This document shows positions 12,275-60,419 of a stretch of DNA of 64,000 nt, one piece after another. Each line of letters starts with the position of its first letter. Positions within the stretch are counted from its first letter, which is position 1. The stretch is from Lepidodermella squamata. Lineage: Eukaryota > Animalia > Gastrotricha. Below the pieces are notes generated by a model, which searched no databases, was not told where the DNA came from, and was given only the letters and a program-made list of their open reading frames with translations. The stretch is from assembly GCA_047495785.1 (NCBI GenBank), contig JBLDXI010000054.1, forward strand, positions 3,720,001 through 3,784,000. Reading direction: 5' to 3'. Made by a program: the position numbers and the translations under genes.

Positions 12275-12657
12275 TGTGTTTGAATGGCGCAATAGCGACG
12301 AGAAGTTATCTTTTACATATATTATTCTCTTATTAAATAAATTTTAGGACCAACATGCGTCTTTAAATAACTGGGATACCATTTACGCTTTTTATTCCCC
12401 GCCGCTTTATCGATCGATTTCCGACATCCGACATGGCGAGTTTCAGAACTTGGTGTAAATACTTGAGAATTGAGCGCTAAAAGCAAGGCAACGACGATCA
12501 GCGGGCAACGAAGAATAAGAGCGAGGTATTCATTCATTAGAACGTCTGGTTTTTATTAAACCCCAGGGATTTTGAATTAAAATGACATGATAAAAATATT
12601 CTCCTCAAACAATCTGCCAATTTTCTAAATGATGCCATTGTCTGCGATAGCCTGGAT

Positions 12658-17600: not shown

Positions 17601-18674
17601 GCATCATTGTTATAACAATAAAATACAGCTGATTACTCTTCTTTTTGTCAGTTGTTACTCATCGTCTCAGCTATCAGAAATCAGGAAGCGTAGATAAATC
17701 GATCAAATATGTAGAACATTTTTCCGCTGAAAGGTGTTTTGGCGCATTCCGCGCAGTCGCGTCACTGTGGTTGCGAGGAAACGTGACCTTTTAAATCTAG
17801 GTCGACCGAACGTTGCCATCGTGTGATTTACTGCCATTTAGAGACAAATGATCAGTTTTTTGTAAACAATTAATAAATCATGCTGAAAATTATTGGCGCT
17901 TGAGACCACTATTGTTCTGGTTCATTAGTTTCAATAAGTGCTTCAGCTGATTCAGCAGACGCAGACGTTATCATTTAAAGCCTCTTGTCAGAACGCTGCA
18001 GGTATAAAAATGATAGAAATTAATTACCAAATAATGCACAGGCAATAGTCCAATATGGTCCATTCAATCTTATTAATGAACGCATGATGGATTTTTAATG
18101 CGTGTCCCAACATTGGTTGATGCCCCATGTGAAGCATACTGCAAACCTATAACGATGTGGGCTAGTTGCAGGGCAGCAGCATATGAATTTCTGTGCAACC
18201 ACTCATTCAATCTTCGGATAATTCGTCCGCCCAGTACAAATTTTATCGATTTAGCTGGGCATGTGGCCGCGAGCTAATTATGTCAGTGGCGTGCAGGCGG
18301 AAGGAAAGGCTGTATCTTGAATAAAAAGATCGCGCTAAAAGAAAATGACATATAGGGTATGGATGTTTTAAAGGCTTTGATTGAACCTGCCCTGTAGCGC
18401 ATGCTGCCCTACGCGACATGATTGAAGCGTGGAGCTTGGACCGTATAGCTGCAGTGGATATGTTTTCAACACTTGAACGGACGTTGAGCTAATAATAAAA
18501 ACGTTGAATGCCGCTTGTTTTCAACCCCTCCGTTAACACGTGAGAAATAAAAATAAGATAAAACGTGATGTTGTGCCAAATTTGAGATCGATGTTGATGC
18601 TTCCTAATTGCTGATAGACAAATCTTGAATTCTAAGTTTCAAAGCACATGCAGCTTAACAATAACTTGTCAACT

Positions 18675-25942: not shown

Positions 25943-26848
25943 ATGCCAGCGAAAGTAGCCGTCGTAACAGGTGCGAATAAAGGCATCGGCCTTTCTATCG
26001 TCAAACTGTTGTGCCGACAACACCCCGACTGGATTATTTACTTGACGGCACGCAACGCCGAACTCGGTCAGCAGGCTGTGAAACAACTCGAGAGTGACTA
26101 CAAAATTTCGCCACGGTTCCACCAACTTGACATCGAATCAACGGAGAGTATCGCGGCGTTTCGCGACCACCTAGCCGCTAATTACCCTCAAGGTATCAGC
26201 GCGCTAATCAACAACGCCGGTATTTATTACAAGTCCGAGGCTGTGCCGAAATTTAGCCGCGAAAAATTCCAGAAAACCGTGGAAATTAATTATTTCGGAT
26301 CGTTGAATGTCTGCAACCATCTTTTCCCGCTGTTGGCTGATGGCGCTCGGGTCGTTTTTGTGTCTAGCCGCCTCGCTCAGGTCGCCTTCTCGCAGTACAC
26401 CCAAAAAATTCAAGACCGACTGCGAAATTGCTTGACGGTTGATGAAGTCTCGAAAATAATGCGTGAATTTACCGAATTACCCGAAGAGCAGTACACCTCA
26501 GGCGGCTGGTCCCCGGTCCCTTTAGCTGAGCTGGCTCCGAAATGGCAACAGGCCATGGTTGACCTGCTGCCTTATGGTACGTCTAAAATCGGCCTGAACA
26601 TGCTGACCCAAATTTTCCAGACCGAATTCGACCTGAAAGCGTCAGATGCCGGCGCCGAGCAATCATCAATTGTCATAAATGCTTGTACGCCGGGTTTGGT
26701 TAAGACGGAAATGAATGTTCGCGGCGTGAAAACGCCCGATCAAGGCGCTGATGTTCCGGTTTTTCTCGCGACATTGCCACCTGGAACACATATTCGAGGA
26801 ATGTTTCTGGGCGATGATCGCTCGATCGTAGACATGTTTCATGTTTGA
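25943..26848 (+). CDS. Carbonyl reductase (CBR1-like SDR), intronless
   Basis: VTGANKGIG, LINNAG, YGTSK, CTPGLVKTEM and QGADVPV motifs; 301 aa. Confidence 0.9.
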   Translation: MPAKVAVVTGANKGIGLSIVKLLCRQHPDWIIYLTARNAELGQQAVKQLESDYKISPRFHQLDIESTESIAAFRDHLAANYPQGISALINNAGIYYKSEAVPKFSREKFQKTVEINYFGSLNVCNHLFPLLADGARVVFVSSRLAQVAFSQYTQKIQDRLRNCLTVDEVSKIMREFTELPEEQYTSGGWSPVPLAELAPKWQQAMVDLLPYGTSKIGLNMLTQIFQTEFDLKASDAGAEQSSIVINACTPGLVKTEMNVRGVKTPDQGADVPVFLATLPPGTHIRGMFLGDDRSIVDMFHV

Positions 26849-34715: not shown

Positions 34716-36420
34716 ATGAAACCAATTTTGAATGAAGAGTATACTCGCAGAAACTCCAGACCTAAAAAAGAAACCTCACTGGATAAAATGATTCGCGGTT
34801 ATGAAATCATGAGAGAATTAACGGAAAAAGATAAGCTTTTCACCCATATTTACGAAGCGAAAAATGACAAAGGAGATCGGTTCCTGGCCAAATCAATGTG
34901 CTTCACATCGGCTGGCAAAAAAGCGATAACTCAGGCAGCGAATGAGATTGAAATTCTGCGCAAAATCAAACATCCAAATATCGTCAATTTCGTCGAGTCT
35001 TTCACGGAAAACTCCGACTTTTACGTCGTAATTTCTTACTATGACCGAAGCAAGACTCTTCATAACCGGATAAACCTGCAAAAGATGGCCAATATCTATT
35101 TCAGCGAATACGAAGTGGTTGTTTGGTTCGCTCAGATAGCTAGCGGCATCGAACATTTGCATGCTAAGAATATCATGCACAGGTAAAACTAAATCAGAGC
35201 TAAACTTGTTCTGCTCTGGTAATGAATTTCTTATAAAAGGAACTTGAAAACTCAGAGCATTTATCTGACCGATGGCGATGTCGTTAAAATCGGTAACTTC
35301 GGACTCGCCAGGTACGGATTGATCTCTTATATTTTGGATATCTAATAGGATTTTCTAGAATTTTCGAAGACCATGAAGAATTCGCAACAACCATTGTTGG
35401 GACACCGTATTACATGGCTCCGGAATTTTTCCAACATGTTCCAGTATGAAAATTCATGTCTAATGTCTATTTCCATGCTAAATTGTTGTTAACTTAGTAT
35501 ACGAACAAAACAGATATTTGGGCAATGGGCTGCACGCTATTGGAATTGATGACACTACGTCACGCCTTTTCAGCTCGAGACATGAAATCACTGGCCTCTG
35601 AGATTCTTAAAGGAGAAATGCCGCAAGTTCCTTCTGGCCATTTCAGCCAAGATCTCGTCGATTTAGCGATGATAATGTTGTCGCTGAAGCCTGATAGTCG
35701 GCCTTCAGCACGCATAATCCTTAGACTGCCTTTCATCAAAGAGCATATTCAAAAATTCATCGATTCCCAAAAGCAAGAAAATAGCGATCTTAAATTATTC
35801 ACTTTGGTAAGGCAATTTTGGTTCGACTGCAGCCATTTCATTTAGTATTTTATAGATGCCCGTAAATGAGATAGCAAGGGCTAACCGGCGCAACAGAATT
35901 GCTGATCAGAAACGGGCTAGTTCAGCAAGTAATTTTTTTGTTATTTTCTTCGTAAAATGAGGTCATTTTCGAAAACTCGTCAGGTGGAATAAATCGCGTC
36001 TCCAAATCATCAGAAGAAGTGACGGAGCCACTTAACTGCCGGATGAGCCAAGTTCTGCGAGACGATAATCAAAGATCAGCTTCGACTGACCAGCTTGCTA
36101 CTAATAATAACATGCTGACAATTCCTTCTGGCATCACCGCCCTGGTCGACCGAAATCGGTTGAACAAACGAATCGAGGCTCTGCATCAGGAGTGTCTCAA
36201 CGGCCTCGGCTTGCAGCGGTTTCACGAAGCTTGGCAAATTTTCAACGCTTCAATTGAAAAAGAACGCGACTGCGAAGAGGAAGAGACTTCTCTAGAGAAA
36301 AATCTGCGCGAATTTCTGGGTGACAACGATTTTTCACAATACGCTTCGAAAATCATCGATTTGAAATTTTGTGAAGACTTGAAAGAACGCCAATTGTTTA
36401 GCGGCCATAAGCAGCTTTGA
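34716..36420 (+). CDS. NEK4/NEK1-like protein with pseudokinase-type domain (start could be 34788)
   Basis: HPNIVNFVESF, WFAQI, HR|NLKTQSI, KIGNFGLAR, VGTPYYMAPE, DIWAMGC..ELMTLRHAF. C-terminal RIEALHQECLNGLG motif resembles the NEK1/4 tail. Confidence 0.85.
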
Positions 36421-36601
36421 ATACAACTCGTGTTTTTCCTCTACGTTTTATCAATGGCCGGCTCGGGTACGTTGTAAAAAAACATGCGATAAAAATACGC
36501 CAGTCGTAATAATTAACAACGTGTTGTGTTGCATGTGTGGCATGAGGTATTTTTATGACCCGATTTTGTGAGTGGGTTGCTCACACACAACAAACATCAT
36601 A

Positions 36602-37814
36602 ATGAAGCGGCAGTTATCTGATGTTGACTTGAGCGACCAAGATCGCCAGCAGAAATGCATAGCTGTTAGCCGTACAATCACCGACCTGCCAAATGAACTT
36701 TTGTCGCAGATTTTCATCTGCTCATCCCAGTTGAGCATTCGAGATTTATTTTCAAGCTGTACTCTAGTTTGTCAGAGGTTTGTTTTCAACGGTTTTCCAG
36801 TTTTGCCTTTATTCTAATAATTTTCAGATGGCATTCAATTATTCAATCAGACATCTTCTTGAAAAATGTGATAACAGTAGAATTTGACGGTAATCTCGCC
36901 GCGGCTTTTGCTGCGATTCCTCACGCTATCGAACGATTTAAAACGCTGCTCAGTGTTAGTCCACTTTTTGGACTGGTTCCTTACAAATTACAACTCGACA
37001 GTGAGCTGCATTTGCCTGCTCTACGCGTCACCTCAATTGCTCATTTTATTGACACGCTGCAAAATTGCGATGATCGTAAATGGCAATCAGCGTCTCATTG
37101 CTACGTCAACGGCGGCTTTTGCAATCACTACTGGTATTGGCTAATCAATTTTAAAACACTTCTCTTGGATTTTCCTGAGGTAATTTTGTTAGTTTTTCAG
37201 GTTTCGCGTTTTTTTCATTAATTTAAGGAGGATTTTTTATTTCACTCGCGTTTTAAATTTTTCACGCCGAATTGTTTAAGATTTATTTTTAATTTAATTT
37301 TGTAATTTTGTAGGTTATCAGCGTATTGTGCATGCCCTTCACAATAGGCGGACCCTACGTCAAGGTGACATCATGCAGTCCGTTATATCTGCTCGACGAG
37401 CAATTAAACCTGATCGAAGACCCGATCGAACCCGAACCGAATGACGATGAAACAACGCCGATATGCTGGACGGTTAAATGCTACCCGCAAGGCGTGAATT
37501 ACGTCGCGTTTGAAATTTACGACGACTTCTGCGGCAACGAAGAAATGCCGCTCCGCCTGTTGTGGCCATCTCAAATTGCTAGATTTGAGCAAAAAATGTT
37601 TCTAGCAGCTATGAATAGGCGATACGGCGCGATAGTTAGCGGATATGGTGACACTAATTCTGAATGCAGTCGCAATGTAAGTGACAGTGATGACGACGAC
37701 TTCGGCAACCCGGATCGAGACGCTAGGGCCCGTGACGAATTTCGGCGATGTTTCCAGCGCATGAGCAGTTCTGAAAGCAGCACATCAGAGAGTGAAAACG
37801 CTTTTGTTAGCTAG
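36602..37814 (+). CDS. F-box protein with possible FBA-like (FBXO2/6/44-type) domain
   Basis: ITDLPNELLSQIF..CTLVCQR|WHSII F-box; introns ~36778-36828 and 37180-37313; YPQGVNYVAFE resembles the FBA motif; acidic tail. Confidence 0.75.
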
Positions 37815-38176: not shown

Positions 38177-41100
38177 CTATGCATTAGCGTTGGCATTGTT
38201 GATACTGGAAAGTTCTGGTAGCGTGATAAGGTCTTGCGCGTTTATTCTCAGCCTGAAATCAGCAATGACAGAGAATATATAGGCAATGAAAAGTGTCTCC
38301 TTACTTGGGATCTTTCAGTAGCAGACATGAAAGTATCCTGGTGAGGCTCTGCGTGTATTTTGCCGGAGGTAAAGGCGAGTAATCAATGCTTACAAATTCA
38401 CTGATATATTCCTGTTAATTGAACACTGAAGGACTTACTCTTTGATTTTCCCCACCATGATCAAAGTCAAGCCGCTTTTATCGTCAAACTAAAAAATCAG
38501 GCCGAATTAATAATAAGCGATGTTAAACGAAGCCTTCATTTACTGTTCTTCGCAGGGTGGCCATTTCATGAATGCAACAACCGAGCGCCCACATATCGCT
38601 TTTCGCCGTCCATAGGTTTGCGGACTCGTTTGATACCAGCTCGGGGGCAAGGTATGGTACTTTTCGGGGAAACGATTTTATCAGACCCTTGACTCCACTG
38701 AAATTTAATACTAACAAAAATGTCAAGTAAAAAGAAGAAAACAAACATCAATGTCATTCCTACGCCAGCATCTCCCAATTTAATCAATCCTTTCGAGTCT
38801 TTCAGAAAAATATTCTGCCCGAAAATAAAACGATAAGTTTATTCTAGCGGCAATTAGCGAGCTCTTACGTGAGAGCCAACGTCGCGATGAACGATCTGGC
38901 GGCTGTGAAGGAATGTTAGGGCATTAGCGATTTGGTAGGCCATGGAGAGGATATCGAATTCCGGGTAACTTGCGCCCTTTCGAAGCGATATTGCCTTAGC
39001 CAAGCTGCCCCTGGTGAAACATTCCAACACTACGCCGAGGCCATGCGCTGGCGCTTTGATTATTTTCTAAATTATTGAAGTTCGGGATAAAGTGAAAATT
39101 AAGTCTTACAGGTGAAGAGGCGCTTGTATATGATGAAGTTTTTATGGCTACATGCAGCGACTTTCGATATCTGGAAGTAAAAATTCATTAAGGTCCAGAT
39201 CTCTTGAATGATATTTCACCTCTGCTTTGATCGCGTCGATAGCAGTCTTGTCACTTGTAGCCAATGACAATTGCTTTATCACAACGACAGTCCCTTTCAC
39301 TTTGTCGTTGGCGGTGTAAGATCGGCCGAAAGTTCCTTTCGCGCTCAATTCCTGGCGTTCTTCGTACAGTTCCTCCGGCTGAATTTCTTCTAGGGCCAGG
39401 TTTATAGAACTTAGCCTGTTCAATGACGAAGCAGACGCGCTTCTCTCTGCCGTCAACAAGGACCCAACAGCTGCGAGCTTCAGGGCTTGCTCAAAAGGCT
39501 TTATCAAATCCTTAGCTTTGTAACGATTGCTGCGATAGAGTAGTATCGAATAAATAGGTAAATATTATTTGGCCTAGAGTTTCAATGAGGCTCACCTCGG
39601 ATTAAAAACCAACAGTTTTTCGACGAAATCTCGAATTACAGTCGACTGTATTACAGAAGTAGGAACATCGAAAGTTTCTTTCTGGAGCTTCCTGTATTTC
39701 AAAGTTCAAGAAACAGTCTCAACTAATCGCGCCAAATGTTACCCGAAGGCATCACCAAGGTGCCGAGCACTAATCTGGAATTCCAAGCTATTTAATTTGT
39801 GAGTGAACACAAGTATGTCTTTTACCGGTAACCGAAGAGTCGCAAGTTCGAAAAGCACAACTCCTGCTGACCATTCATCGATGATAGGGCCGTAAGGTAC
39901 ACGAGTGAAACAGGCCGCTACAACATCTGGGGCCAAATAGCTTGGAGTGCCCATAACGGTTTCAGGACCCGTGCTTGACCTTTAAGAAAATGTTGCTTTA
40001 CATCTTGCATGGTTTGATTTTGGTTTGTTTACGAGCATATTTTGGCCTATGTGAAACATGAACATCTCAAGTTGAAGACAAGGAGCATTGCTTACCCCTC
40101 CAAAATCTCCGAGTTTTACATCCTTCTTGATGCTGAGAAGTATGTTCTACATATCAGAGGTAAGGTCTTCATTATTATCGTTGGAGTTAATTGAAAAGAT
40201 TACATCAGGCTTGATGTCACGATGAATGACTCCTTGTTCGTGAATATATGCGACGGCTGACATCAGCTGAAACCCCCATTTCAAAATCTTAGAAGCAAAT
40301 ACTTGACATATAAGCAGATAGTATAACTAGCATGAAATACCTGATCTTCAGGGAAGGGACCAAGCCCACCACTTTTCCTAGTTTTAATCTCTCTTCCAAT
40401 CGTTCCGCCTCCACACAACTCCATTATGATGCAGTAGCCATCAGAATCCTCGAAAGACTCAATATGGCCGACTATATACGGATGGCTAAGTTTGCAAAGA
40501 GCAAGAATCTAACAAGATGATTGGAAATTAACACTAGATCCAGGCGGTTGAAGTGTTGACATACCTCTTGCTTTGCCTTTTCAAAATCTGAGGGGTCGAC
40601 CTTTTTAACGGCAAAGACAGTGAAATGTATTTGGCAATTCAATCAATCTTACGGATAGCTTGTTTATCCTCTTCATCACAAGAAATTCATTTGTTACGTT
40701 CGAAGAAACGCGATAGACGACTCCGAATGAGCCACTGCCCAGTTCTTCGTTTTTTGTATACCTGGACAATGGCAAGTATCGCTTCCAGCTCGGATTGGAT
40801 TGCAAAATTGCCGTGGCAGCTGCTCTTTGACTAAAAGGGAAATCGTAAGCAATAGGAACCTAAAACAGAATTTCGACTACTTCAGATCGACAGTCATGAG
40901 CTGAGCTATGGCGCTTTGAAGTTCATCAGGCGTTATCGAAGAAATCGGAACAGTCAGTGAAACACGCGCAACTTTGCTATAAGATCAAAATTATAGATTT
41001 AAGTCATTAATTGACAACTGCCCCGAAGAAGGAGAGCTCTTTACCTAGATACAACCAATAAATCCTTACTGCTCCCAAACTGCATGGCAATTTATAGAGA

Positions 41101-41926
41101 CTGAATTCATGAGGAATAAACTTCTTTACCGGTTGTTCCAACGTAGCAACGTGAAACATTGTAGCTCCGATCGACCATTCGTCACTAAGCGTAGAGATTC
41201 GTCCTTCGAATCGTTCAGGGGCCATGTATCCAGGATTAGCACCTAAGGGTGACGTTCCATCAAAACTCGCGGCGGATCTTATCGTTGCCAAGCCTCCAAG
41301 CTTCATATCTTCGTTTTTGGCCAAAAGAATGTTCTTTAGATGTCGCCATGAATTATATGAGAAACATGGAATCAGGATGGAACTTTACCTCAGGGTTAAT
41401 ATCGCCATGGATCATATTCGACCGGTGAAGGTAAGCTGCAACGGATAGCAATTGGGCCATCCATTTCAGGGTCGATTCAGCCGTAAAAGGTCCTAATTTG
41501 CCCAACGCACGCTGAGCGATTGCCGAAGCCAGAGATCCCCTCTCGCAGTATTCACTCACAAGGTGAAACTTTTCAGGAGGATCAGCTGTGTCATCCATGA
41601 AACTGTCGTGATATCGCAAAAGGAAAGGATGCACAAGGTTTTTTAGAGTGTCCGGCTATCGGGAAACAAATTATGATAGATTATTAAAACAAATTATCAT
41701 GGTATACTTCTTTTAGAGCCATTTCCAGAACTTTCAGGTCAGGCTGCAATGGACATTACAATTTGTTTTTGTTTTCATTCGGCGAAAAATAGAGTACCAA
41801 TAATTTTAAGGAAATTTCCTGCATAGCCAAAATCTCCCTCGTTTTCTTCGAAGTTACCAGCGTGACATCTCCAAATTCGCCACGACTAACAACTTTGTTC
41901 AGGCATTCGAAATCACTAAGCACCAT
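38177..41926 (-). CDS. Tandem kinase protein E: three NEK-like domains (pseudo - intact - ambiguous)
   Basis: Continuous spliced frame from MVLSDFEC. D1: LAMQ/HGDINPEN/GLA. D2: GSGSFG/VMK/HRDIKPDN/DFG. D3: AKGTFG/VIK/HRDVGSHN/DAG. Ends ..NNANANA* at 38177. Confidence 0.85.
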
Positions 41927-42015
41927 GTTTTCAATAAAAGCCGAACCTATCCGTCTTAAAAATACTGCGCAATTTAATTCACTTTCTGGAGTAGATGTAC
42001 AGGCATCATGACGAA

Positions 42016-44496
42016 TCAAACAAATGTTGCAAAAGCTTCAGCTACTTTCGCGGCATTTGGTCGAAATTTCTCTTCGACCAACATCAGCATTACGAAAGCT
42101 GTAATTTTTTCCGAAAAGTTTTCACTTTTAATTGGGCTCAACGACAACCTAAAATTTGGGGGTGATGAAAGTTGCAAGTAAAAAGTGAAGGCGTTCATAC
42201 GATTTTATAGCTGAATTGAGTGATGAAGGACTCCCAGAAAACTGAAAAGAGTATCACAAGTGAAAAATGATTCCTAAAAAGTTTCGAGCTAACCGCTGGT
42301 TTCAGCATGATCATTTCATACAAGACCAAACCTAGAGACCAAACATCGTTGGATGAGGTGAACATTTGGGAATTCAGAAGTTCCGGGGCGCAATAAGCCA
42401 TGTCAGCAACTCGCTTTTCAAGTTCGGATCTGAAGCTATTTCAATATTGTCTGATTGATCACTTAGGATCTCTCTTTGAATTAAATCCTACCTGAGCTGT
42501 TTGGCAAATCCAGGTTCACCGAGCTTCACAGTTTTCAACTCAGAATCATGAAGAAAAATATTCTAAGAGCAATTAAAATCAGAAATGAATGATTTCGAAT
42601 CAAGTTTTACCGAGGGTGACACATCGCCATGCACGATTCCAAGGTCATGTAAATATCTGAGAGCCTCTGCTACTTGTCGGCCGACATTGACCAGCTGTGT
42701 AGTACTGAACTGTAATGAGTTGGCAAGTTTCCCCTTTATCGCAGCAGCCAAGTTTCCCTTTCTAACGAAATCCATTGTAAGCCAATAAGTTCCATCATTG
42801 TCTGTATCAAATTTAGAGATAACCTTGATCCGGAGTTCCTTGAATTTAATAGCTTACTGATGAAATGAGACCGAATCGAAATTAAATGCTTATGTTGTTG
42901 CACTTGCTTGATGTAATTATCATTCTGAAGAAAGTCCACAATATTATGCGAAAAAGTGTAAACCCTTTCTAACCAATAGCGTGAGTTTGTTCAATTTAAA
43001 CTTGGAAGAGGTAATCTGAAAAAGCAGGCAACGACAGTTTTAAGAAATTTCTCAAGCCTGGGCATTACTGAGCTATGAGTGTAGGATTTGACCAGAGCCA
43101 ACATATTCGTCTTTTTGTCTCGCACCGAGCTACACTCGCCGTAATAGCCTCGAGGCAAACCTCCAAGAATTTCGAAGTCATCCTCGATCGAGCATATGGG
43201 CAAGTCCAAAATCACGATATCTTCTCGGTAGTCGTCAAATGCATCCATTTTGAGGAGCTCCGCTGCTTCAGCGCGTTTGAGTGGATCAACGACGATAAGT
43301 CTCTCTATCAGTGTTCGAATGTCTTTCGAGATCGGCCAGGCAGGGAATTGGTTCGTTATTCTCTTGTAATCACCAGCCAATATTTTACTGATTTTTTAAT
43401 TAAATTGTCATCAGCTGAAAGCTGAAAATTAAGATTACTTACTCATACAGGTTTCTCATCTTTTCAGTAGGAAACTGAGAAATATTGATTTAATTTAAGA
43501 TGATGCTTAATTCTGCCCAAATTGCTGCTTACCGCGTAATCCAACGTTGCTAACTCGTACAGAACGGTGCCTACTTGCCACTCGTCTACTACTTTGGTGT
43601 ACGGGAGATCTTTTTTCACAGCCATGACCATTTCCGGAGCCAGATACATCGGCGTTCCTATAGCGGTATTAGCGACGTCACCTATTTTTACGATCCCCAA
43701 GTCACCGAGTTTCACAGATTTTTCGGCGGAAAGAAATATGTTCTTAGAAAAATTAGGGATAACATTACTAAGAATTAAAATCAGTATGTTCTTACTTCGG
43801 GTTTTATATCGCGGTGAATGATAGATGCAGCATGAATTACATCAAGAGCGGATAGCAGCTCATAGGCCCATTTCAAGATCTATATTCATTCCTATTAAAA
43901 GATGAAGTTAAGGGAAGAATTATCAAACCTGTTCACTAGGGATAAAGGTTCTTCGTTTTCTTGCATCATTGATCTCATCGAGTAAACTGCCTCCGGCGCA
44001 GAATTCCATAAAAATGTAAAACACCCCTTTGGCTTTATCTGTGACAAATTTTAACATGTGAGAATTGAGAATGAATCAAACGTCTGTAACTAATTTGCCT
44101 TCAAGGTGGCTGATGAATCGAACAATATTTTTGTGATTCAACGACTTCAGAGCATTTATCTAGAAGTTACAGATGCGTATGATAACCAGTTAATAAGATA
44201 GATAAGATAGATAAGATATGATAGATGGGACTTACCTCTCTGTTCGTGTAGTCTTCTATCACCATGGGATCCTATTCGTAAAAGAAGCCATGATCACAAT
44301 AATACAAGAACTCGTTCAGACAAACTTTACTACCCGAAGGATCATGCTTGGCGATAACTTTCAAAACGACTTGCTCCTTTGTTTCTCGATCTTGCATGAG
44401 CATTGCAAGGCCGAAAGCGCCTTCACCAAGGTTGCCATTAATTGTCTCGTATGTTTTCCTTATCTCAACGGGAAGGGCGTGGTTCAAGAAGGCCAT
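42016..44496 (-). CDS. Tandem kinase protein D: two NEK-like domains (intact - pseudo)
   Basis: D1: GEGAFG/VLK/HRDIKPEN/DLG/APE. The linker is read in one exon (DPLKRAEA..FEILGGLPRGYYG). D2: LVK/HGDVSPSN/EPG. Includes GC-AG intron 44098-44039. Confidence 0.85.
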
Positions 44497-44763
44497 AATG
44501 GATTACTAGATTTGATGATCTGCGGTCAAAACACCTGAATGCATATTCATTTACTATTCATGCGCATCAATGTAGCTTACAAAATGTTGTAACAAGCGTT
44601 GTTGAATGAGCAATGCTTTTTTCTGCAGTTGAAAGAATTTTAGAAAAATTCCTAAGAATGAGGTTAACCCATTTAAAAGAAATCATCCGCACTTGATTCA
44701 GAATGGAGAAATAATTAAGAGGGCAGGTTATTAAGAGGTCGTTATATTAGGTTTTTCGATTGT

Positions 44764-47700
44764 TCACAACAGAGTGCCAAGTATTGTTGAAACACCGGAC
44801 ATTTCCAACAACATAGCTGCATTGGGTCGATTTCTGCGATAGAAATAAACAATGCTTTAATTTTCCAGTTATTAAGACGACAATACTTGGGATCAATTTG
44901 CAGCAATTTGTCAACCAATTCGATGTATTCAGCTGAAAACTTTGCCGGAGATATCGCATCGACTTTTCGGCCACTTGAACAGCGTCAAGATTCAGTGAAC
45001 ATCGTAAACCCAAGACAAATTTGAATCCTACCTATTTATATTGGCTATTGTCTCGTCAACGGACCTCCCGAGGAACTAGCGACAAAGATTCGTAAATCAA
45101 TCACCATGATGAGATTAAGATAATAACTAACAGGTTTCTTGAAAGTTGCCACCTCAAACAGCAAACAGCCTAGAGCCCACATGTCAACAGGGGTATCCCA
45201 GCTTTTCGCAGTTGGATTGTTCAGAAGCTCAGGGGCCAGATTTGAGATAACGTCAGGATGTCTGTCTTTCAATCGGACTACTCCTCTAAATATGAAAAAA
45301 TACAATATCAACTTAGTGCTATCCAAGATTGGTGAATTTACAGCTGTTGAAGAGTTATTCCGATGGATCCCAGTTTGAAAGCAGTTCCTTTCAGATGAAC
45401 ATTCTGGAAAATCCCGTATTCTAGAAATACAGATGAAAACTGTCATTTGTCTTACGTCGACTTGAACATCTCGGTGAGTTATTTTGTTTTTGTGCAGATA
45501 ATCGAGACCGCTAGACAGATTTGCAGCTATCTGCCATGCTTTCGCCGGGTTCAATGTATCCGAGCCTTCTCGCACCAGTTCGCCAAGCATTCTACCCCTT
45601 AGTGCCTCAAAAACAATGACGTAGTCATTTTTCGGGGCTAAATAGACCATTTATTGCAATCAATGACTCAATATTGACTTCAAGCTTACTTTTGAAGTGC
45701 TCGATATAACGGACTAAGCTAGCATTCGGCGGTAGCTTGACGATGAAATCAACCTTGAATACCGACGTAATTGCAATAAATAAAGCCCGTTGCCTTTCAC
45801 CTACCTCTCTGATGAGGTGCTCAGCTTTAACTTTGTCAGCGTCCATCTTTTTCGCCTCTCGCAATCTCAAAAACTTGAGAAAGCCGTCGTTATCCCGAAC
45901 CATCTTTGACTGCCCAAATGTTCCACGGTTGCTGTAAGAACTCGATTCTGAAAAGCTTGCTGTCCAATCTTTTTCAGCCAATTTGACATCGGGGAATGGG
46001 CACTCAATTAGCTCTTGAGCTGCCACAGGTGAGCGATATTGGCTGGTAGAGGGTTCGAAAAACTTCAGGGCTTCATTAGCTGTCCCTCGTTTCCTATAGA
46101 ACAGAACAAGATTAAAGATCACTAACTGATCACAGTGAAACTAACTTTGGGTCAGTCACCAGCAGTACCTCGACCGCACTGCGAACAGCTTCAAGCTTAA
46201 TTATTTGTGGCGAGTGTAGGAATTTCCCATTTTTAGCATTTCTTGAAAGAAGGACAGCCGATTCTCAATTCAACCGTAAAACTAATCGATGCTTACTCAA
46301 ATAGGTCCATGAAGTTGATCACTTTGAACTTGAATGAATAAAGAAAAGAAATATCGACGACTGAGCTAAGAGGACACGTTAGTAACTTACAGGTAGAACC
46401 AGGGTAGCCATCTCAAAAATTACCACACCTTCAACATATAATATAAAAAAGTTGTATCTTCGCTCAAACAATAGGCAACTGACCTGCAGACCATTCATCA
46501 ACAAGGTAGGTGTATCCTTTATCATCCAACAGATCTGGGCACATATAGTTCCACGTCCCAAGAAAAGTGTCAGCGTATGCGGCTGTTTGGCTGGAACAAG
46601 TATAGGTTAGTTACTAGCTGTGATATAATCGAGGTCGAACTCACGGTGAGATCCTTTGAAAAATAATGGGTGAACGACACATTTTTAAAATACGATTGCA
46701 AAAGCTCACTTGACCGATCCAAAGTCACCAAGCCGGACCACGTTGGTTTCGGTCAAAAAGACATTCTGATTTGTTAACAATGATTAGGCTTTAGTTTTCC
46801 CTCATTGAGAATTTCCAAGTATTACCGCTGGTTTGATATCGCGGTGGAAAACCTTCTTCATATGAATGTAGGCAATAGCGGACAGCAAGCACTTCGACCA
46901 CTCGAGAACCTTGACAACAGTAGAAATTAATATAGAAATAAAGAATGATTAGCTTTTCCCCTTTCATTACATCCTCATCGGGTAGCATCCTTTGATCTTT
47001 CTTGGCCGCGCTAATTCGATCGAACAGCGTCTTTCCGCCACAATATTCCAGCACGATGCAGAGCTCGGTTTGCAGTTCGAAGTAGTCGCGGAACTTGACT
47101 ATGTTTGGATGTTCGAATTTTTTCAACGCCTCGACCTACGAGAAAGGGAGTACAAGAATTACTCTAGAGGTGTAGCTGTGTGCTAAATACTTACCTCATC
47201 CTTAGTCCTGTCTAGATCTTCTTTCGGAACCTGTAAGTTGAAGAGCATTAGTCTCAAACCGATTAGTTCGTTAAATCACCTTCTCGATGTTGATTCTCTT
47301 AATAGCCACTACTTCCCCTGAAAACTTGTTTTTAGCTATAAGGACCTTCCCGAAGGTCCCCTTGCCGATTTCCTTGCCAAGTTCGTATTTGTAAAGCATC
47401 ACGGTGTCAAGAATTTGCGAAGCCGATGAACGTTTCCTTAGATAAGGTAAACATGAAATGGTTTACAATTAAAATATAACGATATTCACTTGGGGTCTGG
47501 TTGAAGCATCTTTATTAAGACCTCTTGAATATCAGCCGACTTGATTCGAGACAGGGGGTAATTGTAGTTACCCTCATTGATGTTTCTGAAACCGCAAAAC
47601 AAATGAAAGGCGAACAGTAATGGGGTGAAACTAACTTTTTGATATCTTTAAAAGTTTTACCAACGAACTGAAACAAGGAGTAATATAAGTAAATAAGGAA

Positions 47701-48500
47701 TGGCCATCTTTCAGGTGAGCACTAACTGGTAAAGACAAGGTAGCGAGTTCGAAAATGCAAACTCCCGCCGCCCAGATGTCTACTTTATTCGTGTAGCCTT
47801 CATCGCCCCGGCTTAATATCTCCGGAGCCATGCTATATATAAAATATTAGCTGATTAGGACAATATGATTGAAACAAAGCGTACTGCGTAGGGGTTCCAG
47901 TGAAAGTTTTAGTCACTTCAACTCCGAGTTTGGTTACTCCAAAATCGCCCAGCTTTACGTCATCGTCTTTATTCAGGAAAACGTTCTGTATTGAGAGAGG
48001 CTTTAATATAGCTGTATTAAGACATTTGAAATAAACAAACGTCAGGCTTGATGTCTCGATGCATGACCTTCTTGCTGTGGGCGTGAGCAATCGCCGAGAG
48101 GAGTTGGCCGCTCCATTTCAGGACATCGTTATCAGGGAAAGGAGTTCCGACCTCAGCACGGCGCTTCGTGATGCGTTCGCCAAGCGACCCATTCTGGCAG
48201 TACTCCAAGACGAGGCAAAAATAAAGCGGTGTTTGAAAGCTGTCGTAGAGGCGCACGATGTAAGGATGCAGCAATGTGCGCATCGATTCCTCCTCCCCTT
48301 CGACGTATCTCTTCAATTCTCCCGGTAGCTATGTACAGCAGAACAAGATTGGAGGCAATGGAAACATCGGTAGATCTTACTTTATCAACGCTTATCTGCT
48401 TCAAGACTAAAATGTCCTGCGTATCCTTAGCCTTCACAAGCTCGGCAGTTCCGAATTCGCCCTTGCCAATCACCTTCTTCAACCGTTCGTACTTATCCAT
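44764..48500 (-). CDS. Tandem kinase protein C: three NEK-like domains (intact - intact - pseudo)
   Basis: D1: GKGEFG/VLK/HRDIKPDN/DFG. Linker KRSSASQILDTVMLYKYELGKEIGKGTFG leads to D2: AIK/HRDIKPAN/DFG. D3: FLR/HRDVQVDN/SIG. Ends ..ILGTLL*. Confidence 0.88.
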
Positions 48501-48745
48501 ATTAACTTAATTTCTATACTAAATATCGGAGACATGGCATATGGCTTGGAGAAAGAAAGATTTGATGGCATTGGATTTTAATCAATAAAGTCTTCAATTC
48601 TGTGACGAATTATCTGGTGGAGTCGATCAAACTTCACAAAGCCACACGCCTCCATGATTATCGGCCATGATGACGTAGTAAAAACGTCGAAACCAGTCGG
48701 CACCAAGCGACGTGTGGCTTTGAGGAGTTCAACAAAATTAAGTCT

Positions 48746-51700
48746 TCAAAGAGATGCTGCATCTGAAATAGTTTTTCTTTCCCTGTTGGGAAAATGTCAA
48801 AAATTAAAGAGAAGCGCAATTTATTTCACGTTTACCTAGTGTTTAACCGCAGCAAACCTTCAATTAGGCCTTTCGTAGCGGTGGAACAGCTGGTACTCGG
48901 AATCGCCGTAAACTGCCCTCTGGAAAAACGGAGGAAGTTACAGGATTTTCAAAAATTACCCATACAAACCTATTGATTCGGTCAGCAATAATGGTTCCAT
49001 TAGCTCCCTTGAACTAATTAAGATATAAGAAGATATTCATCGGTAATGAGAGACATCATGCAATTTTACCGCTTTTTCTAGAGTAGCCATCTCGTACAAA
49101 GTACAGCCCAGTGACCATGCGTCTGACTGAAAAGACCAATTGGCCCGGGCTATTACTTCCGGCGCCAAATATGAAACTTTCATAGGGTGGTCTCTAAGTA
49201 ATACTGAAATCGGACTAGAAAGAATTGTTGCAGTGTGAAGTCCGAATTCGATTGTTATCAACTCACATTGTCGAATACATTATTCCGCTCTCGCCTAGCT
49301 TGACAATTCCGGAATCTCTTAGGAATACATTCTGTTCATAATAACCCAAAATCTGTTTCAAGATTCATTCCAATGATAAATTGGCTACCGTGGGTTGAAT
49401 GTCCCGGTGAACGATTCGGCGCTCGTGCAAGTAGGATAGAGCCTCCGCCACACCTTTCCTAATGCGATCGATGTCAGCATCAGGAAAACGGGTATTCGAA
49501 TCAATTTGGCCACTAATGGCTTGAGCCAAACTTTCTGAATTCGAAAACATGATGAGAAATACAGTTCGGAGTAAATTTTGATCTATCTCACTTCCACCTC
49601 GCTCCATGAAAATGCCGTAGTCACCTTCTTTGTCTAGAGCGATATAAAATATGAAGAAAACTTGAAAACCAAGCTGTACAGGAAAGTTAGTTTACTTGTA
49701 AATTGAAGCCTTAGCGTAACTAATTTCGGATGCTTTGAGATTGGGATCATTGCGTCTACCTTGAAGCGCCGGTCTTTAGAACAAAAATGAATCAAGTGAA
49801 CAGCAAACCTCAGATATCATTTGTTCGAATTGTTTCCGATCTTTCATCTATAAAAGAGGAATTTATCATTCGTGGAGAAGAATATCAAAAATAGCATACC
49901 GCATTTGCCCGCCGTATTTTCAGAATACCGGCCAGTTGATTTCCTCTATTGCGAGCCATAAACATCTCGCCGAATAATCCGCTTGTTACCCCATCATTTA
50001 ACAGTTCGAAAGTTTCCGAAATCGAAATGGTATTAAGGCTGATAGCGTTGGTCTTGGAATCCGAAGTAAGATCACTTAGGGCCTTATCTATCTCGGGAAT
50101 GATTTGTTTAGCTTTCCACCGTAGCCTATGAATACGTCGGAATAGTCAATCCGGTCTGCTTTGCGTAAATTTTACCTCAGCTCTCGAACAATTAGCTTCT
50201 CGACAATGCCACGAATTATGGGCGATTTTACAGATGAAATTGGTACCACAAAGTTACCTTCTGTGATATTTCTGAAAATACAACCAAGTTAACAAAATCT
50301 ATCAATTAGCAATTATAACTAGACTTACTTCAAGGTAAGATAAATTTTGTTGTCAGTGAACTTCATTGAAAAGATCGAGCATGAAATTTATGAATTGAAG
50401 ATTATTTGGGGATCAAACCGGTAATTTCTTGGTTGCCAACTCGAAAATCACAACACCTTTAATAATTATTTAAAATCATACTTTATGGCTTTTATTGCAG
50501 AACCTCTCACCTGCCGACCATTCATCAACTTCGGGTGGGTAAGGCTTGTTAGTCCTTTCCACTTCTAAAATGTCTGGGGCAATATAAGAATTGGTGCCTG
50601 CCTTGGTTGCAGCAACAGAATTTCTGCGAAATGGTTAGCTATAGTAACATTCGATCCTCTTCTTTTATGAACTCACGCCAAAATCTTTAAAGGGAACCCT
50701 TTATCTTGGAAATAAGCTTTGGAAATGTTTCTTACTTTCGCAAAACCGAAGTCTCCTAACTTGACGTCATTGTTGTGATTGAGGAAAATATTCTGGAAAA
50801 GGTAACAAATACTGTGAAATATTCGGTCGAGTTATCCTAATGGCCTACCTCGGGCTTAATATCGCGGTGAACCAAGTGTTTAGAATGCACGTGTTCGATG
50901 GCGAGCATTAGCTGCTTGCTCCACTTCAAAATCTTCGCGACAAATCTCAATGAGACACGTCAGACTGTAAAATTGCGGCTTCTTACTTGGTGATCTGATA
51001 TTTGTTCTTTAGCTGCAATGTAACGGCGCAAATCTCCGCCCTGGCAGTATTCCATAACAATGCAAAAATCGGTAGGGTCGTCGTAACTGTCCAGGCAACG
51101 GACGATGTGCTCGTGATCGAGACATCGATAAGCTCGAAGCTAGAGAAATTAAGCTAATGGCTGCATATTTTTTATCTCAAAGATCAAACCTCATTCCGAG
51201 CAAGGTTCAGTTCCTTGTCGCTCAATTCTCCCTTAATTTCCCAAGAAATTGTATATTTTTTACCGATTTTGAACAATTACCGATGCTTTCACTCGAGTGA
51301 ACTTCTTGAGGGCGCAGAATTCGCCGGTTACTTTCGATTTAGCTTTATACACTGCTCCATATTCGCCGCGTCCTATCTCCTCAAGTTCAGTGAATTTCGA
51401 GAAGAAAGACCCATTCGAGTACTTATGCAGCATCTTTGTATCTCGTAAAATGTCAGATACTGCTGCCCGATCACTGAAAATCGCATATTATTGATACTAT
51501 TTTCCTATAAATCACTCTCAATATTACGTCCGATCCTTAACTAGAAGCCGCCTAACCACAGTCTGCACAATATCCGAGCTGATAGCAGTCATAGGGGTGC
51601 TGAACTTCATCGTGCTCACATTGCTTAAAATAAACAGATACATCACGTTCGTAAAACATGCGAGAGAGCAGTTATTACCTTATGACCTCTCCTATATTGC

Positions 51701-52609
51701 CGCTAAACTATAGTTAATGGTAGAATTTTAAGAAATCAAATATAGAAGTAACATACTGGAAGACGAAGCGTAGCTATCTCGAAAATCACAACTCCCGCGG
51801 ACCATTCATCCACTTTCATGTGATAACGTTCGCCGTCATCGTTGTCGTGGTGCTCCATCATTTCTGGGGCCATGTAGGCAAAACTGCCGACCGCATCCTC
51901 GGCAAGGCCAGAATTTCTTTGATATTGGAGCTATAAGACTCAATTCGTCGTTTCAAGATGATTTTCCTTACCCAGTCTGTTTCATAGCTGAAAATTCGGC
52001 TAATTTTAAATCTTTTTTATCCGAAACGAAAATGCCGCCAGATTTGATATCGCGGTGCATTATGCTTAGCGAATGGATGTATTCGATTGCTGATAACAAT
52101 TGACCGGTCCATTTTACCACCTACGAAATAACTTGTACAAAAGTTTTGAATAAAGGGAATAAATTAGGCACCGTTTCGAACGGAAAATGTTCACCGAGCA
52201 TTTTTTGCCGCTTTATTTCGGTAGCTAACGTTGTAAATCCATCAGCCGAGAAAACTATGAAAGGCTCAACCCCTGTGGTACAGGATTCGCGCAGCCTTAC
52301 AACATTGGGATGGTCCAGCATGCGCAGGGCTGACGCCTATTCGACGAGGAAATGATAGAAAACCTGATCAGAAACAACAACAAACCTCATTTTCCAACTC
52401 CTCGTAATCCTCAGCTGTCATGGTCTGGAAAATATGGGATACATCAGGATTCTCTAGCGGAAATAGCAGGTACTTACAGTAGTGGATCCTGCAAGCCGCT
52501 TCATCAAAAACTTCTCACCGGTTGACTTGAGCTTGACGACGTTCGTGACCGCTACGTCATCCCAAACTATTCGCTCTTGAATCTCGTATCGATCAATCGC
52601 TGCTCTCAT
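48746..52609 (-). CDS. Tandem kinase protein B: three NEK-like domains (pseudo - intact - pseudo)
   Basis: D1: no Gly loop, HRDIKSGG, EFS. D2: GRGEYG/ALK/HRDIKPEN/DFG. D3: ILK/HRDIQPTN/ESG. Ends RERKTISDAASL*. Confidence 0.85.
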
Positions 52610-52915
52610 TTTTTTAAAGCTAAAATGTAAAATTACCCGGGGAAGTTATACACGTAGGCTAGGAGGAAAATTTCCGGCAGTAACATTAGCCGCAATAGAT
52701 AAAAGTCGTTATCAAAAGTTGTTAATTCGCTGAAGGCGTATAAATTTCCATGGAAGCTCAGATAGCGCTGAGCTGATTATGTATTACCTAGGTTATTTTA
52801 GGATATCTTCATCGGATAGAGCTCACAGTGTCTGATCAAACTCAACAGTAATTATTTCGAGCGATATAAGAGAGTCATAGCTTTGCAAGCGGGAAATTTC
52901 ATTAAGCCGGAATAA

Positions 52916-55615
52916 TTAACTGCTGCCGTAAGTTTGGACGTAGCTTCGCATCTCGGGCAAAGACGTGACGTCGTTTGGGCTTTTGCGCAGCCTAAAATAT
53001 TCGGAAAAAATGAAAATAATAGCCGTGTTTACGATGACATTACGCACGTTGGATCCCGATTAAGGAGGTTCGCAACCAAGTCGTAAAAAGCGGAACTATA
53101 ACTTCGGCTTCGCATATCAGAGACTATCGAGCTACGTTCAGAAAAAGAACCAAAAATTGCGCCAGATATAAAAATAAAATCGCTTACTGCCGATCTTTCG
53201 GTGTTAACTGAGCACGCCCGTCGTTTGCAAACTTGGCACAAGGAAATTAAACGTGAAATTAACAGAGAAACTAAGGCTGACTTACAGCTTTTTTCAAGGC
53301 GCCCAATTCGTAGAGAACACACCCAAGGCTGAACATGTCTGTTTTTGAGTCCCACCGCCCCGTGAAACTTGGGGACAATATTTCAGGCGCTAAATAACCC
53401 AAGCAATCCGAGTTCGATCTCAAGCCAGTGGGTCCACTGAAATGATTAATTTAAAATAAATTCAGCTGGTTAAAGTCATTTTCTCACAGCAGCTCCTTTG
53501 CAATGCCCAGATCGCCCAACTTGAGGCCGTTGCCGTCTCCTTTCAAGAAAATGTTCTATAAAGGCGAGTTTAAAAGCTGTCTCATTAGATGTCTTCGGCA
53601 GTTTCATACCGAAGATTTAACGTCCCGGTGAGTAATGCCTTTGCCGTGTAGAAATTTCAGCCCAAGGCATATTTGGTAGCAGTACTCTAAAATAGTTGAT
53701 TCGAGCATGAAGCCTTGATACCGGACTAGCTTTTCCACCTGGCCTGCCAAGCTCTCTATTTTAATGTAAAATTAAGGAAAATTTCACGAAATCAAATCAG
53801 CCAACTGTTGCGAAAAAATTCAAGGCGTAGATAGTAATCCGATCCACCTGGAAAATAAGAGCATGCGGCAAGATTCAGAGAAATCGTAGCTCTTACTTTC
53901 AAATTGTTCCCTGTAAGATATCAAATGAGGATGCCCCTTCATTTTCAGAATTTGATCGATTTCATGCTTCAGCTGGTTTAGCTTAACCCCAGACTGGAAA
54001 TTTGAAGTTGATATGACGATAATTTTTAGAAGTTGCCTTTCCTCACCAAATTCCCGGTGAATCGCTTGACAACCGACGTTTTTCCCGTCTTGTTGTCTCG
54101 AATGACGATGGCTTTACCAAAGGAACCAGCTGCTTTCCCAAGATCTTGAAGCTCTTGGTACACGGTTCCATAAGCAACCTTGGCAAGCGTAACCTGAGGA
54201 GCAGGCGGCTGACCACCTGGTTGTGGCGAAGGAGCTTGGCGGCTTGGAATCTTCGGCGGTGCCGCAATCGGAGGAACTGCTGGTCCTGCTGCAGGACTGG
54301 CAAGTGGGTCATAACGCTTCATGGACGGGCTAGATTCTAAGGCATCCTTTGCTGACAAGCGTTGACTAATAAAGGGCTCATTAAAGATATAAGCTTAAAA
54401 TGTTGAAAAATCAGCTAACTCGGGTTTCTGTTGCAGAAGCCCTTCGACGATTCTTCTGACTTCATCGTTCTTCACAGCGGTCAATGGAACTGCAAACTTT
54501 CTAGCATTCAGATTTCTTAAAAGAAATAAGTCTGGCTACACTGAATCTGAAAAAGGAACCAAAAGACCTGATGAGCTCGTTGATATCTTTCGCTGTAAAC
54601 TTAGAGAAAAATAAAATGTACTTATCGGAGCAAATTTCAAGGTAGATAGCTTACTGGTCGTTCGAGAGTTGCAAGCTCGAAAACTACGATTCCTATGGAC
54701 CATTCGTCCACTTTAGCTGAGTACATAGCATTCTTTTCATGGGCCTGGAAAATTTCCTATAAAAACAAAACGATTTGGTAACAGCGAATGAATCTGTGGT
54801 CACTTCAACTAACAAGGGCCATGTAAGCCGGAGTTCCCATAAGAGTACCACCTTTCAGAGAATCACTGAAACAAATTGATAATTGAGAAAACTTCGAAAT
54901 CGACTTTTCTCGCCTACTCTGTCATTTTTACAACCTGGAAATTTGTAAATTTTTGAGTGCTCAAATTTGGAAAATCGATGAATCTTACACCAAAGTCTCC
55001 GAGCTTCACGTCTTTTTCACCGCTGAGAAAAATGTTCTGTAAACAAAACGGACGATAAGCTCATTCATGTTGCCATTCAAGTGTCGAACGAACGTCTGGT
55101 TTAATGTCTCGGTGCATGACTTTCTGCTCATGGATGAAATTGATCGCCGACAACAGCTGACCGCCCCATTTGAAGACCTGCTCATCAGAGAACGGTATCG
55201 GCGGTTTGAACTTCTTTTTCGCCGCGATTTCACCGCCCAATGTGCCTCCACTCGCAAACTCCATGACAATGATGAAGTGCTCCGGATTTTCGAAGCTGTC
55301 TTCGTACCTGACTACATTCGGATGGTTCAATTTTTGTAGCGCTGTGATCTATTAAAATCGGATTTTCGTTGCTGTAAGATCAAAGCGGTCAGATTTACCT
55401 CTCCCTTCGCATATTTTAATTCGGTTGCGTCAACCTATAAGAATTGTGTCCTTATTCTTCTTTGCAATAAGAGTGTGACGAAATACCAGTTTCACGTTGA
55501 ACTTCTTTGCTACAAAAGACTTGCCAGTCGCTTTCGAGGTAACCAACCAAGCTGTCCCGTATTGTCCTTTCCCCAGCTGTCTTCCGGTATTGCTATATTT
55601 AGAGTCGAACGACAT
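52916..55615 (-). CDS. Tandem kinase protein A: two NEK-like domains joined by a Pro-rich linker (both look intact)
   Basis: D1: GKGQYG/VAK/HRDIKPDN/DFG. Linker PAAGPAVPPIAAPPKIPSRQAPSPQPGGQPPAP. D2: AGSFG/VVK/HRDVKSSN/DLG/APE. Ends ..QTYGSS*. Confidence 0.88.
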
Positions 55616-57901: not shown

Positions 57902-60419
57902 ATGGCTTCCAACAGAGGAGGAAATCAAAAGAATCGTGGCAAAAATCGCGGCGGTAAAAACAGCAACTACAACAATAAGGTATCGAAGGAAGACCGCCAA
58001 TGGGCCGAAGCCGCCAAAGGCTGTGCTGCTCTATCGCTCCAGCTCAATTTTGTCAATGACGATGAAAACCAGGCATCACCTGGCTGTGTCAAGGCCAAGG
58101 TTTATTTTCAACGCGGCGATCGAAAGCAAATGCTTGAGATTTTGAAGCACCTTCACCTGGGCAGAAGCGAAAAGGAAGAGGGCGAAAATATTTTGTCACA
58201 ACATCAAATCGACCCGGAGACATGCGACTCGGATTGCCTGCTGAACCTGGACCGAATTTTCGCGGAAAACGAGGCAACCGGCCGGCGCCACTCGAGTTAC
58301 GTTGATATCAACCTGCGCACGCCACTTCCGATTGTAGCGATTGATGTCAAAGATCGGCTGAAATACGGCCGTGTTTCTTTAGTTTCGGGCGGAAAGAAGA
58401 CTTCTGACAACGATGCTAAAACTCACGCTGTCAAATACAAGTGGGTACCGAAATGGACGCGCCGTATCCAGCCAGGCTGTGGGGCTAAAGGCCGTCGCGG
58501 TGGCTACGATACTCGAGTTTTCATTTCAGATAAGGACGCTAATCCTGAACTCGCATCTGATGCACTTCGCTTCGAGTTCGAATTCAACAGTGAAATTGAG
58601 CGATACAACTTCGTCAGCATCGAACGTATCGAGATGGAGGCCTTTAATTCTCAGACACACATTACCCGTCCTCAGGCTCCGAAAAAGCCTGCAACCTCCA
58701 CTATCTCGAGCAAAACTACTGTGGATCCATCCAGTTTGCCCGTTGAAATTTGGGATCGCGTGCTTGCTTCCACTCCAGAGCAACGAATTCAGGTATAATT
58801 TTGTGTAATTATTCAATTATTTTTATTCGATGTGTTTTCAGACTTTGACTGCTTTAGCTGGAGTTTCGAAAAAATGGCGTGAATTTTTTACGCAATCTCA
58901 TTTCTATCGAACAGTTGACTTGAAACCTTTATCGACCTTGCTGCCTCGAGCTTCGATCGAATTCTTGGAATTTTTATCGTCAAACTGCAAAAATGCGCAT
59001 CATTTACGCATTTCCTGGCTTCCCAGCTTCAACGAATGTTTCGATCTCACCGATTTTTTCGCTCGACTTCAGCCCTCGACATTGAAATCGCTGGTCGCCG
59101 TAAATTGCGGTGCAATGAATGATGCTGCTTTGACCAAGCTAGTTCAGTCACAGCAAAATCTGGAGACAGTCAATTTACGCGGTTGCTTCGGAATTTCCGG
59201 AAAAGGTTATAAATCTCTCGCTGAGTTGAGGCAACTTCGGAATCTTGTGCTTGGCAATGTAGTCGTTATTGATTGGGAGGCTCTGCGTGAAATCGCTAAA
59301 AACTGTTGTAAACTTGAAGTTTTCGGATGCTGCGACATTATTCGAGTTTACCCTTATCGTGAAGATTACGTTCCTCTCGTTATGCCTGAAATTCTCAAAG
59401 CCATTTCCTCACCGCATCTTCGCGCTGTAAAAGTTCAGGTTTCGTTGGAAAAATCTGCCGAAGAAAAATCGCAAAATTGCGAAGCTGATTTTTACCGAAC
59501 CTTTTTGTCGAGTAATCCTAACTTGGAAGAATTTTACTACAACAAATTTATTGATGTTGCTGACCTTGGCAAGGCGATTTCAGACGAATCTACAAGCATT
59601 TCACATGAAATTCGCCGCTTCTCTCAATTGCTAATTGAATCTGAGGATAAAGCTGATTCTTCTGAAAGCGAAGATGAAGAGAAAAACGAGAACGAAGATG
59701 ATCTGCTGCGAGAGTTCAAGGCTCGGTTGAAGAAGAACAAAATTACGTTCAAGTCTAAGCCGAAAATCAAGAAACTGCCGGATATCATTGGCCGTTTCAG
59801 TAAACTGTTTCCTAAGCTGGAACGCCTCGGAATTAACGATAACTTGGACTTCGAATCGCCCGACTGGGTAAATAGTTTTACGCTAATTTTTACCATTTAA
59901 TTCTGTGTTTTTCAACAGGACCCAGCCGATTTTCTGAAGGTCTTACCTCACCTGCGCCAACTTTTCTTATGGGAGAAGGATGAGGGAGCTCTAAATGATA
60001 AGCGGCTGCGTGAGGAATTGCGGAAGAAGAAAGCGAAAGATGAGGAAGAATTGCATCGCAAATTCCCTAGCTGCCTGGTCGTTAAACGCCCGACTATAAT
60101 TTCCGTGGACGTTGACTTCTACGACGAACAAGATAAGTACAGCCATGAGCCAGATTACGAGAGCAACGAGGAGGACGAGCTTCATCACCTTGACTATTAC
60201 CTCGACGTTTGCGAGGACGATGAAGATGGCATGTCTTCCTATCACATGCGAGGTATGATGCTTGGCGCCATGCGAGCGGCTCTCAATGGCTCCGATGATT
60301 CTGACGATGAGTTCGGCTACAAAAGTCTGCGCTACGGCGACTACGAGTTGGGTTTCAAATATGCGGCTTTGGCTGGAGACTTGTGCTATGATTCGGATAC
60401 TGACACATATTATTACTAA
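57902..60419 (+). CDS. F-box/LRR protein with long N-terminal extension and acidic C-terminus
   Basis: PSSLPVEIWDRVL..LAGVSKKWR F-box; LRRs (LKSLVAVNCGAMND, LETVNLRGCFGIS); introns 58793-58841 and ~59868-59918. Confidence 0.85.

Follow-up and report, generated by a model that had tools for sequence, protein, structure and literature searches.

NEK kinases carry a single kinase domain, usually together with a non-catalytic tail. Two kinase folds in one animal protein are also found in JAK, GCN2, RSK/MSK and obscurin/SPEG, which belong to other kinase families and mostly have extra domains; in JAK the pseudokinase regulates the active domain, in both JAK and GCN2 the dead domain stands first, and to our knowledge none of these proteins ever has three kinase domains. 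Few animal proteins combine two kinase folds, human having 13 of them (PMC8449880), and a literature search covering mostly papers outside subscription revealed no animal protein described as having three kinase domains or NEK domains in tandem. Here we describe an array of five tandem-kinase genes in the gastrotrich Lepidodermella squamata, at positions 38177-55615 (minus strand) of a 64,000-nucleotide (nt) stretch of contig JBLDXI010000054.1, hereafter the window. The genes encode two or three kinase domains each, lack a tail and place the eroded domain last.

In cereals, the tandem kinase proteins WTK3/Pm24/Rwt4, Sr62TK and WTK1/Yr15 likewise consist of kinase domains only, with active and dead ones joined. 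Their domains come from plant receptor-like kinase families, whereas those of the array are NEK-like and lie in an animal genome. The two kinase domains of Sr62TK inhibit each other in cis, and in WTK3 and Sr62TK kinase 1 senses while kinase 2 engages a nucleotide-binding leucine-rich-repeat (NLR) receptor (PMC12365797). Effector binding and NLR pairing have been demonstrated for the cereal proteins.

The Nek expansion of Giardia is also lineage-specific and consists of divergent, largely dead Neks that are probable scaffolds. In these a single kinase domain occupies the amino terminus, mostly with ankyrin repeats behind it, and the parts of the survey used here report no tandem kinase domains (PMC3218828). 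Two NEK-type domains per chain, mostly with a short linker, occur in dinoflagellate proteins (Durusdinium, Biecheleria, Cladocopium). Unlike in the array, both catalytic loops of these double-NEK proteins are intact, the two domains are close to each other, a long tail mostly follows and the domains form supported clades separate from the array domains in trees. The conserved double-NEK family measures about 950-1200 amino acids (aa; P0007, P0012, P0016, P0023, P0030, P0158), its named members are dinoflagellate and our literature search revealed no description of it. The array resembles known kinase-pseudokinase tandems yet belongs to none of them, since it has neither the single-domain layout of NEKs nor the ancestry of plant tandem kinases.

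Organisation of the array

Direct reading of the minus strand revealed kinase motifs interrupted by very short introns. Splice-aware gene models, trained on 19 introns and corrected by hand in seven places, gave five stop-free genes of 567-855 aa with 2, 3, 3, 2 and 3 kinase domains, 13 in all, as the sequence-only reading had proposed. The 102 introns are 48-76 nt long (median 53) with GT-AG borders in 101 cases and GC-AG in one; GC content is 46% in exons versus 33% in introns and about 42% in the window. At each of the eight domain junctions the subdomain-XI arginine and the following Gly loop lie within a single exon, and together with an RNA contig that joins all three domains of gene C this bears out the proposal of true fusions. 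The claim that no other recognisable domain is present also stood, as Pfam added no domain in the five junction exons examined and neither a clear membrane segment nor a signal peptide was predicted; a coiled-coil or other targeting tail was likewise absent. The tandem-kinase array is therefore confirmed as real. Its features are listed below (all minus strand); front and terminal denote the two domain classes described further on.

Gene A, 55615-52916: 18 exons, 597 aa, 2 domains; splice-aware model
A1, ~55615-54308: front type, intact; a proline-rich linker follows
A2, ~54187-52919: terminal type; K/E/HRD/DLG present, GT absent
Gene B, 52609-48746: 27 exons, 823 aa, 3 domains; RNA run X1 shows splicing of B3 and the end of B2
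B1, 52609-51419: front type, dead; no Gly loop, N to G, DFG to EFS
B2, 51418-50068: front type, intact
B2-B3 junction exon, 49900-50125: in-frame 6-nt insertion at 50062 in one allele
B3, 50034-48749: terminal type, dead; DFG to ESG
Gene C, 48500-44764: 24 exons, 824 aa, 3 domains; model and spliced RNA contig across 48187-45803
C1, 48500-47400: front type, intact
C1-C2 junction exon, 47280-47436: almost without linker; RNA run X1 and model
C2, 47399-46042: front type, intact; 9-nt micro-exon 46653-46645
C2-C3 junction exon, 45805-46093: RNA run X1 and model
C3, 45975-44767: terminal type, dead; no beta3 Lys, DFG to SIG
Gene D, 44496-42016: 15 exons, 567 aa, 2 domains; model, with RNA coverage of the first codons
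D1, first domain of gene D: front type, intact, basal within the front group; model requires the GC-AG intron 44098-44039
D2, 43206-42019: terminal type, dead; HGD, DFG to EPG, no alphaC Glu
Gene E, 41926-38177: 23 exons, 855 aa, 3 domains; splice-aware model
E1, 41926-40782: front type, dead; K to Q, HGD, DFG to GLA
E2, 40781-39475: front type, intact
E3, 39387-38180: terminal type, ambiguous; K/E/HRD/DAG present, catalytic-loop Lys and GT lost

Micro-exons of 8-17 nt directly follow the DFG motif in C2 (46645-46653), B2 (50677-50684), E2 (40033-40046) and A1 (54918-54934). That of C2 is present in RNA.

Transcripts of the array

Two public sequencing runs, X1 (RNA) and X2 (DNA), were compared with positions 44410-50400, which cover the end of B2, B3, gene C and the first codons of D. 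Run X1 showed 34 splice joints, equal to the 34 introns modelled there, whereas run X2 showed none. Fifteen of the joints were placed individually and 19 could only be counted; as 14 of the 15 had served to train the models, independent RNA checks come from the total number of joints, two exons of 62 nt and 9 nt, and the agreement in length. A single spliced contig of 1591 nt, an assembled sequence and not one molecule, covers 48187-45803, from midway in C1 through the whole of C2 to the start of C3; its span is 1553 nt compared with 1551 nt in the model plus an overhang of 2 nt. The three-domain form is thus supported by RNA for gene C.

The depth of X1 contigs, a weak measure, is 0 in the gap between B and C (48410-48609) and 0.55 between C and D (44610-44809), which fits B, C and D as separate genes. 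One giant gene with 13 domains was ruled out, as a stop closes each gene and the depth collapses between genes. The intergenic gaps are 89-306 nt long and contain possible splice acceptors and ATTAAA sites. The shortest, from the stop of D to the start of E (89 nt, 41927-42015), has ATTAAA, possible acceptors and operon-like spacing. Gap lengths and sites would allow an operon, above all for D and E. One RNA contig at 44488-~44610, in the C-D gap and the first D codons, continues for another 29 letters without a match in the window; read on the plus strand, they could represent a foreign leader attached at an AG (antisense, trans-spliced RNA), or they may originate from a paralog or allele.

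Catalytic residues

A residue check gave the same tally as the sequence-only reading, with one refinement for A2. Seven domains (A1, A2, B2, C1, C2, D1, E2) have intact K/E/D/D residues, five (B1, B3, C3, D2, E1) are degenerate and E3 is ambiguous. The claim that every gene keeps at least one intact-looking domain was likewise borne out at motif level. All canonical residues including the activation-segment threonine and the GT motif were found in A1, B2, C1, C2, D1 and E2. A2 possesses K, E, HRD-K-N and DLG and lacks GT, as does every terminal domain, so that only six domains look fully canonical. In the five degenerate domains the Asp of DFG is lost, in addition to Gly loop, beta3 Lys, alphaC Glu or catalytic-loop residues. 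All 13 domains retain the APE Glu/Asp, the alphaF Asp and the XI Arg, residues that hold the C-lobe.

Two domain classes in constant order

The final domains of the five genes (A2, B3, C3, D2, E3) form one group and the eight earlier domains another, and in each gene one or two front domains precede a single terminal domain. Trees separated the eight front from the five terminal domains with a support of 100/99; as a group, the terminal domains received 100/99, and the front domains 97/83 in one sample and 91/84 in another. Genes B and E are both laid out dead-live-terminal, and their middle domains B2 and E2 pair as sisters (99/92). Six intron positions are common to most domains, while an intron at alignment column 250.2 is specific for front and one at 254.2 for terminal domains. 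The classes also have diagnostic residues, with GT confined to front domains. The XI Arg and the following Gly loop are 27-37 residues apart where two front domains meet and 45-81 where a front domain meets a terminal one (exact p 0.018).

Divergence and allele differences

Pairwise identity among the domains is 19-41%, and only two DNA matches, of 29-47 nt, were found inside the array. The array is therefore old, its DNA similarity being gone, and recent duplication or an amplification artefact was ruled out by the same two short matches. Five old paralogs with constant order and varied live/dead pattern provide a natural series for the function of tethered pseudokinases and the origin of the pair.

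The analysis covered 40 of 58 allele differences, of which 35 are coding. Replacements number 11 and silent differences 14 in the terminal domains B3 and C3, although chance alone would yield about 77% replacements (p 0.0004); the front domains have one replacement and five silent differences. The ratio of replacement to silent differences per site is about 0.2-0.3 in the terminal domains. No stop or frameshift was found among these differences, and each of the three insertions or deletions either lies in an intron or preserves the frame. Purifying selection is evident from the allele differences, dead domains included: the deficit of replacements in terminal domains indicates that dead domains are maintained. 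The sequence-only reading had proposed a replacement-to-silent check; as the differences are mostly silent and the paralogs old, neither fast turnover nor diversifying selection was seen in these limited data. Three replacements lie within six codons (786-791) of C3, at 44919-44936, in one RNA allele.

Relatives of the kinase domains

Among solved structures, the A1 exon matched NEK7 and NEK1 best, and for the C1 exon NEK1 was third behind two CDPKs. Front domains have NEK-like alphaE and alphaF motifs, and their best BLAST matches are Nek-type proteins. Short profiles of terminal domains matched PAK, MNK, GRK and NEK1/7 at similar scores. The designation as NEK-like in the sequence-only reading is therefore appropriate for the front domains, and the terminal domains are loosely NEK-like. 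Identity to the best database kinases is 26-39%, no full domain exceeding 39%. In trees with few named references, the front and terminal groups sit on long branches at an unresolved fork beside NEK-like sequences.

A profile search of 1.84 billion proteins revealed many multi-kinase proteins, the nearest being the double-NEK proteins. Multi-kinase matches from named animals (manakin, Danionella, lamprey) have near-identical repeated domains and may be merged predictions. Exon-based searches, which are limited by query length, detected no relatives, and a metagenome search matched unrelated kinases only. These blank results weigh little, because the exon queries are short and the organism's own proteins are absent from the database, in which a flanking carbonyl reductase also found no match above 43%. 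The main text of the Lepidodermella squamata genome paper does not mention kinases (PMC11660948). No match to an already described conserved family was found in sequence databases or literature. Of the earlier claim of a lineage-specific, undescribed family, the lack of a close relative or description held; tandem NEK domains as such also occur in dinoflagellates.

The only other kinase in the window is a conventional-looking NEK gene at 34716-36420 (plus strand). Its kinase domain is degenerate (no Gly loop, HRN for HRD, GNFG for DFG) and it has a tail that we take to be NEK1/4-like. As parent of the array this gene is unsupported, since it groups apart from the array in the tree.

Proposed function and alternatives

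We read the array as an old, lineage-specific set of soluble signalling kinases made of NEK-type domains and regulated by their own pseudokinase domains, to which we assign a probability of roughly 0.55. An ancestral front-terminal pair would have arisen once, the three-domain genes later gaining a second front domain. One or two working front domains per protein would provide the output, triggered by activation-loop phosphorylation, to judge by their motifs. The terminal domain, with intact fold, eroded catalytic site and longer tether, may fold back on the working domain or dock partners, and would control the timing and place of kinase activity in the manner of JH2 in JAK. In the pairs B1-B2 and E1-E2, with a dead front domain ahead of a working one, the C-lobe of the dead domain would lie beside the N-lobe of its working neighbour. 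Because the tether to B2 and E2 is very short, B1 and E1 are most likely built-in allosteric partners, taking the place of the dimerisation on which ordinary NEKs depend. In NEK7, induced dimerisation brings about activation (PMC4632185), and dead Giardia Neks are regarded as scaffolds that stay folded (PMC3218828). The sequence-only reading had cast the pseudokinases as decoys or allosteric regulators; their maintenance by selection fits a regulatory role, and a sensor or decoy role would be conjectural.

Some points weigh against this reading. A single origin of the 13 domains is compatible with the trees but unproven (p of the approximately unbiased test 0.36), the allele analysis rests on 40 of the 58 differences, and A2 and E3 retain the main catalytic residues, so that the terminal domain may be weakly active instead of a regulator.

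As a tentative alternative, the genes could be an animal counterpart of the cereal tandem-kinase immune receptors, in which one domain baits a microbial or parasite protein and the other signals, perhaps to NLR-like receptors. The joining of kinase and pseudokinase is that of WTK3 and Sr62TK (PMC12365797), and NEK7 binds NLRP3, possibly without need for its kinase activity (PMC7750478). Moreover, 25 of the 31 kinase-domain differences among the 40 lie in terminal domains and six in front domains of similar lengths; this excess is unsafe, however, as 18 of the 58 differences fall outside the tally and it disappears (p 0.34) if these lie in front domains. The array genes contain no integrated decoy domain, the duplicates are old without recent turnover, and the low replacement to silent ratio of the terminal domains (about 0.2-0.3) also speaks against immunity. 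A crude scan of the window in six frames, in which short introns could hide a motif, revealed no Walker A, GLPL (NB-ARC) or ankyrin motif. That these NEK-derived proteins form an independently evolved animal immune module, with one domain as the sensor and the terminal one contacting TIR-NB-ARC-ankyrin receptors or NEK-ankyrin sensors, appears quite unlikely. If the array does work with NLR-like receptors, animals would have reached the cereal tandem-kinase design independently.

A role as regulators or scaffolds of cilium and cytoskeleton is an equally tentative reading; here the tandem layout would deliver an active kinase together with a docking module to basal bodies or axonemes. Gastrotrichs move by cilia, and double-NEK proteins are present in flagellated dinoflagellates. 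Mitosis and flagellum length are under Nek control, ciliates and excavates have expanded Nek sets, and most Neks of Giardia resemble the array in being old and stable as well as divergent (34% to the closest paralog; PMC3218828). The array proteins have no coiled-coil or targeting tail and group with neither the neighbouring conventional NEK nor the dinoflagellate proteins. An immune or a ciliary pathway could each be combined with pseudokinase-regulated signalling kinases, for which the ciliary proposal names a pathway.

It is very improbable that single-kinase genes were merged by the reader or the assembly, or fused neutrally with decaying extra domains: animal multi-kinase predictions can be merged tandem genes (near-identical repeats P0001, P0013, P0035), the assembly was probably made from amplified DNA (PMC11660948) and the RNA region spans part of B, gene C and the first codons of D, but the intra-exonic junctions and the C1-C2-C3 contig, the 19-41% identity of the domains, their same order in five genes and the purifying selection on dead domains argue against it, and for gene C an artefact is largely refuted.

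Neighbouring genes

The following genes were found around the array.

2674-8845 and 18636-21172 (plus strand): three long-exon genes of Venus-flytrap type (ANF receptor domain), at least two of them followed by membrane segments; putative GABA-B-like receptors or members of a flytrap receptor family
8960-11478 and 25943-26848: three genes for carbonyl-reductase-like short-chain dehydrogenases, each coded by one long exon
11566-14469 (minus strand): three or four short related open reading frames with a motif like LSGIERxLLR, not assigned to a family
29829-32690 (plus strand): gene with a Receptor-L-domain and a cysteine-rich (furin-like) region
36572-37814 (plus strand): F-box-like gene directly downstream of the array
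58809-60419 (plus strand): leucine-rich-repeat gene with an acidic tail, upstream of the array

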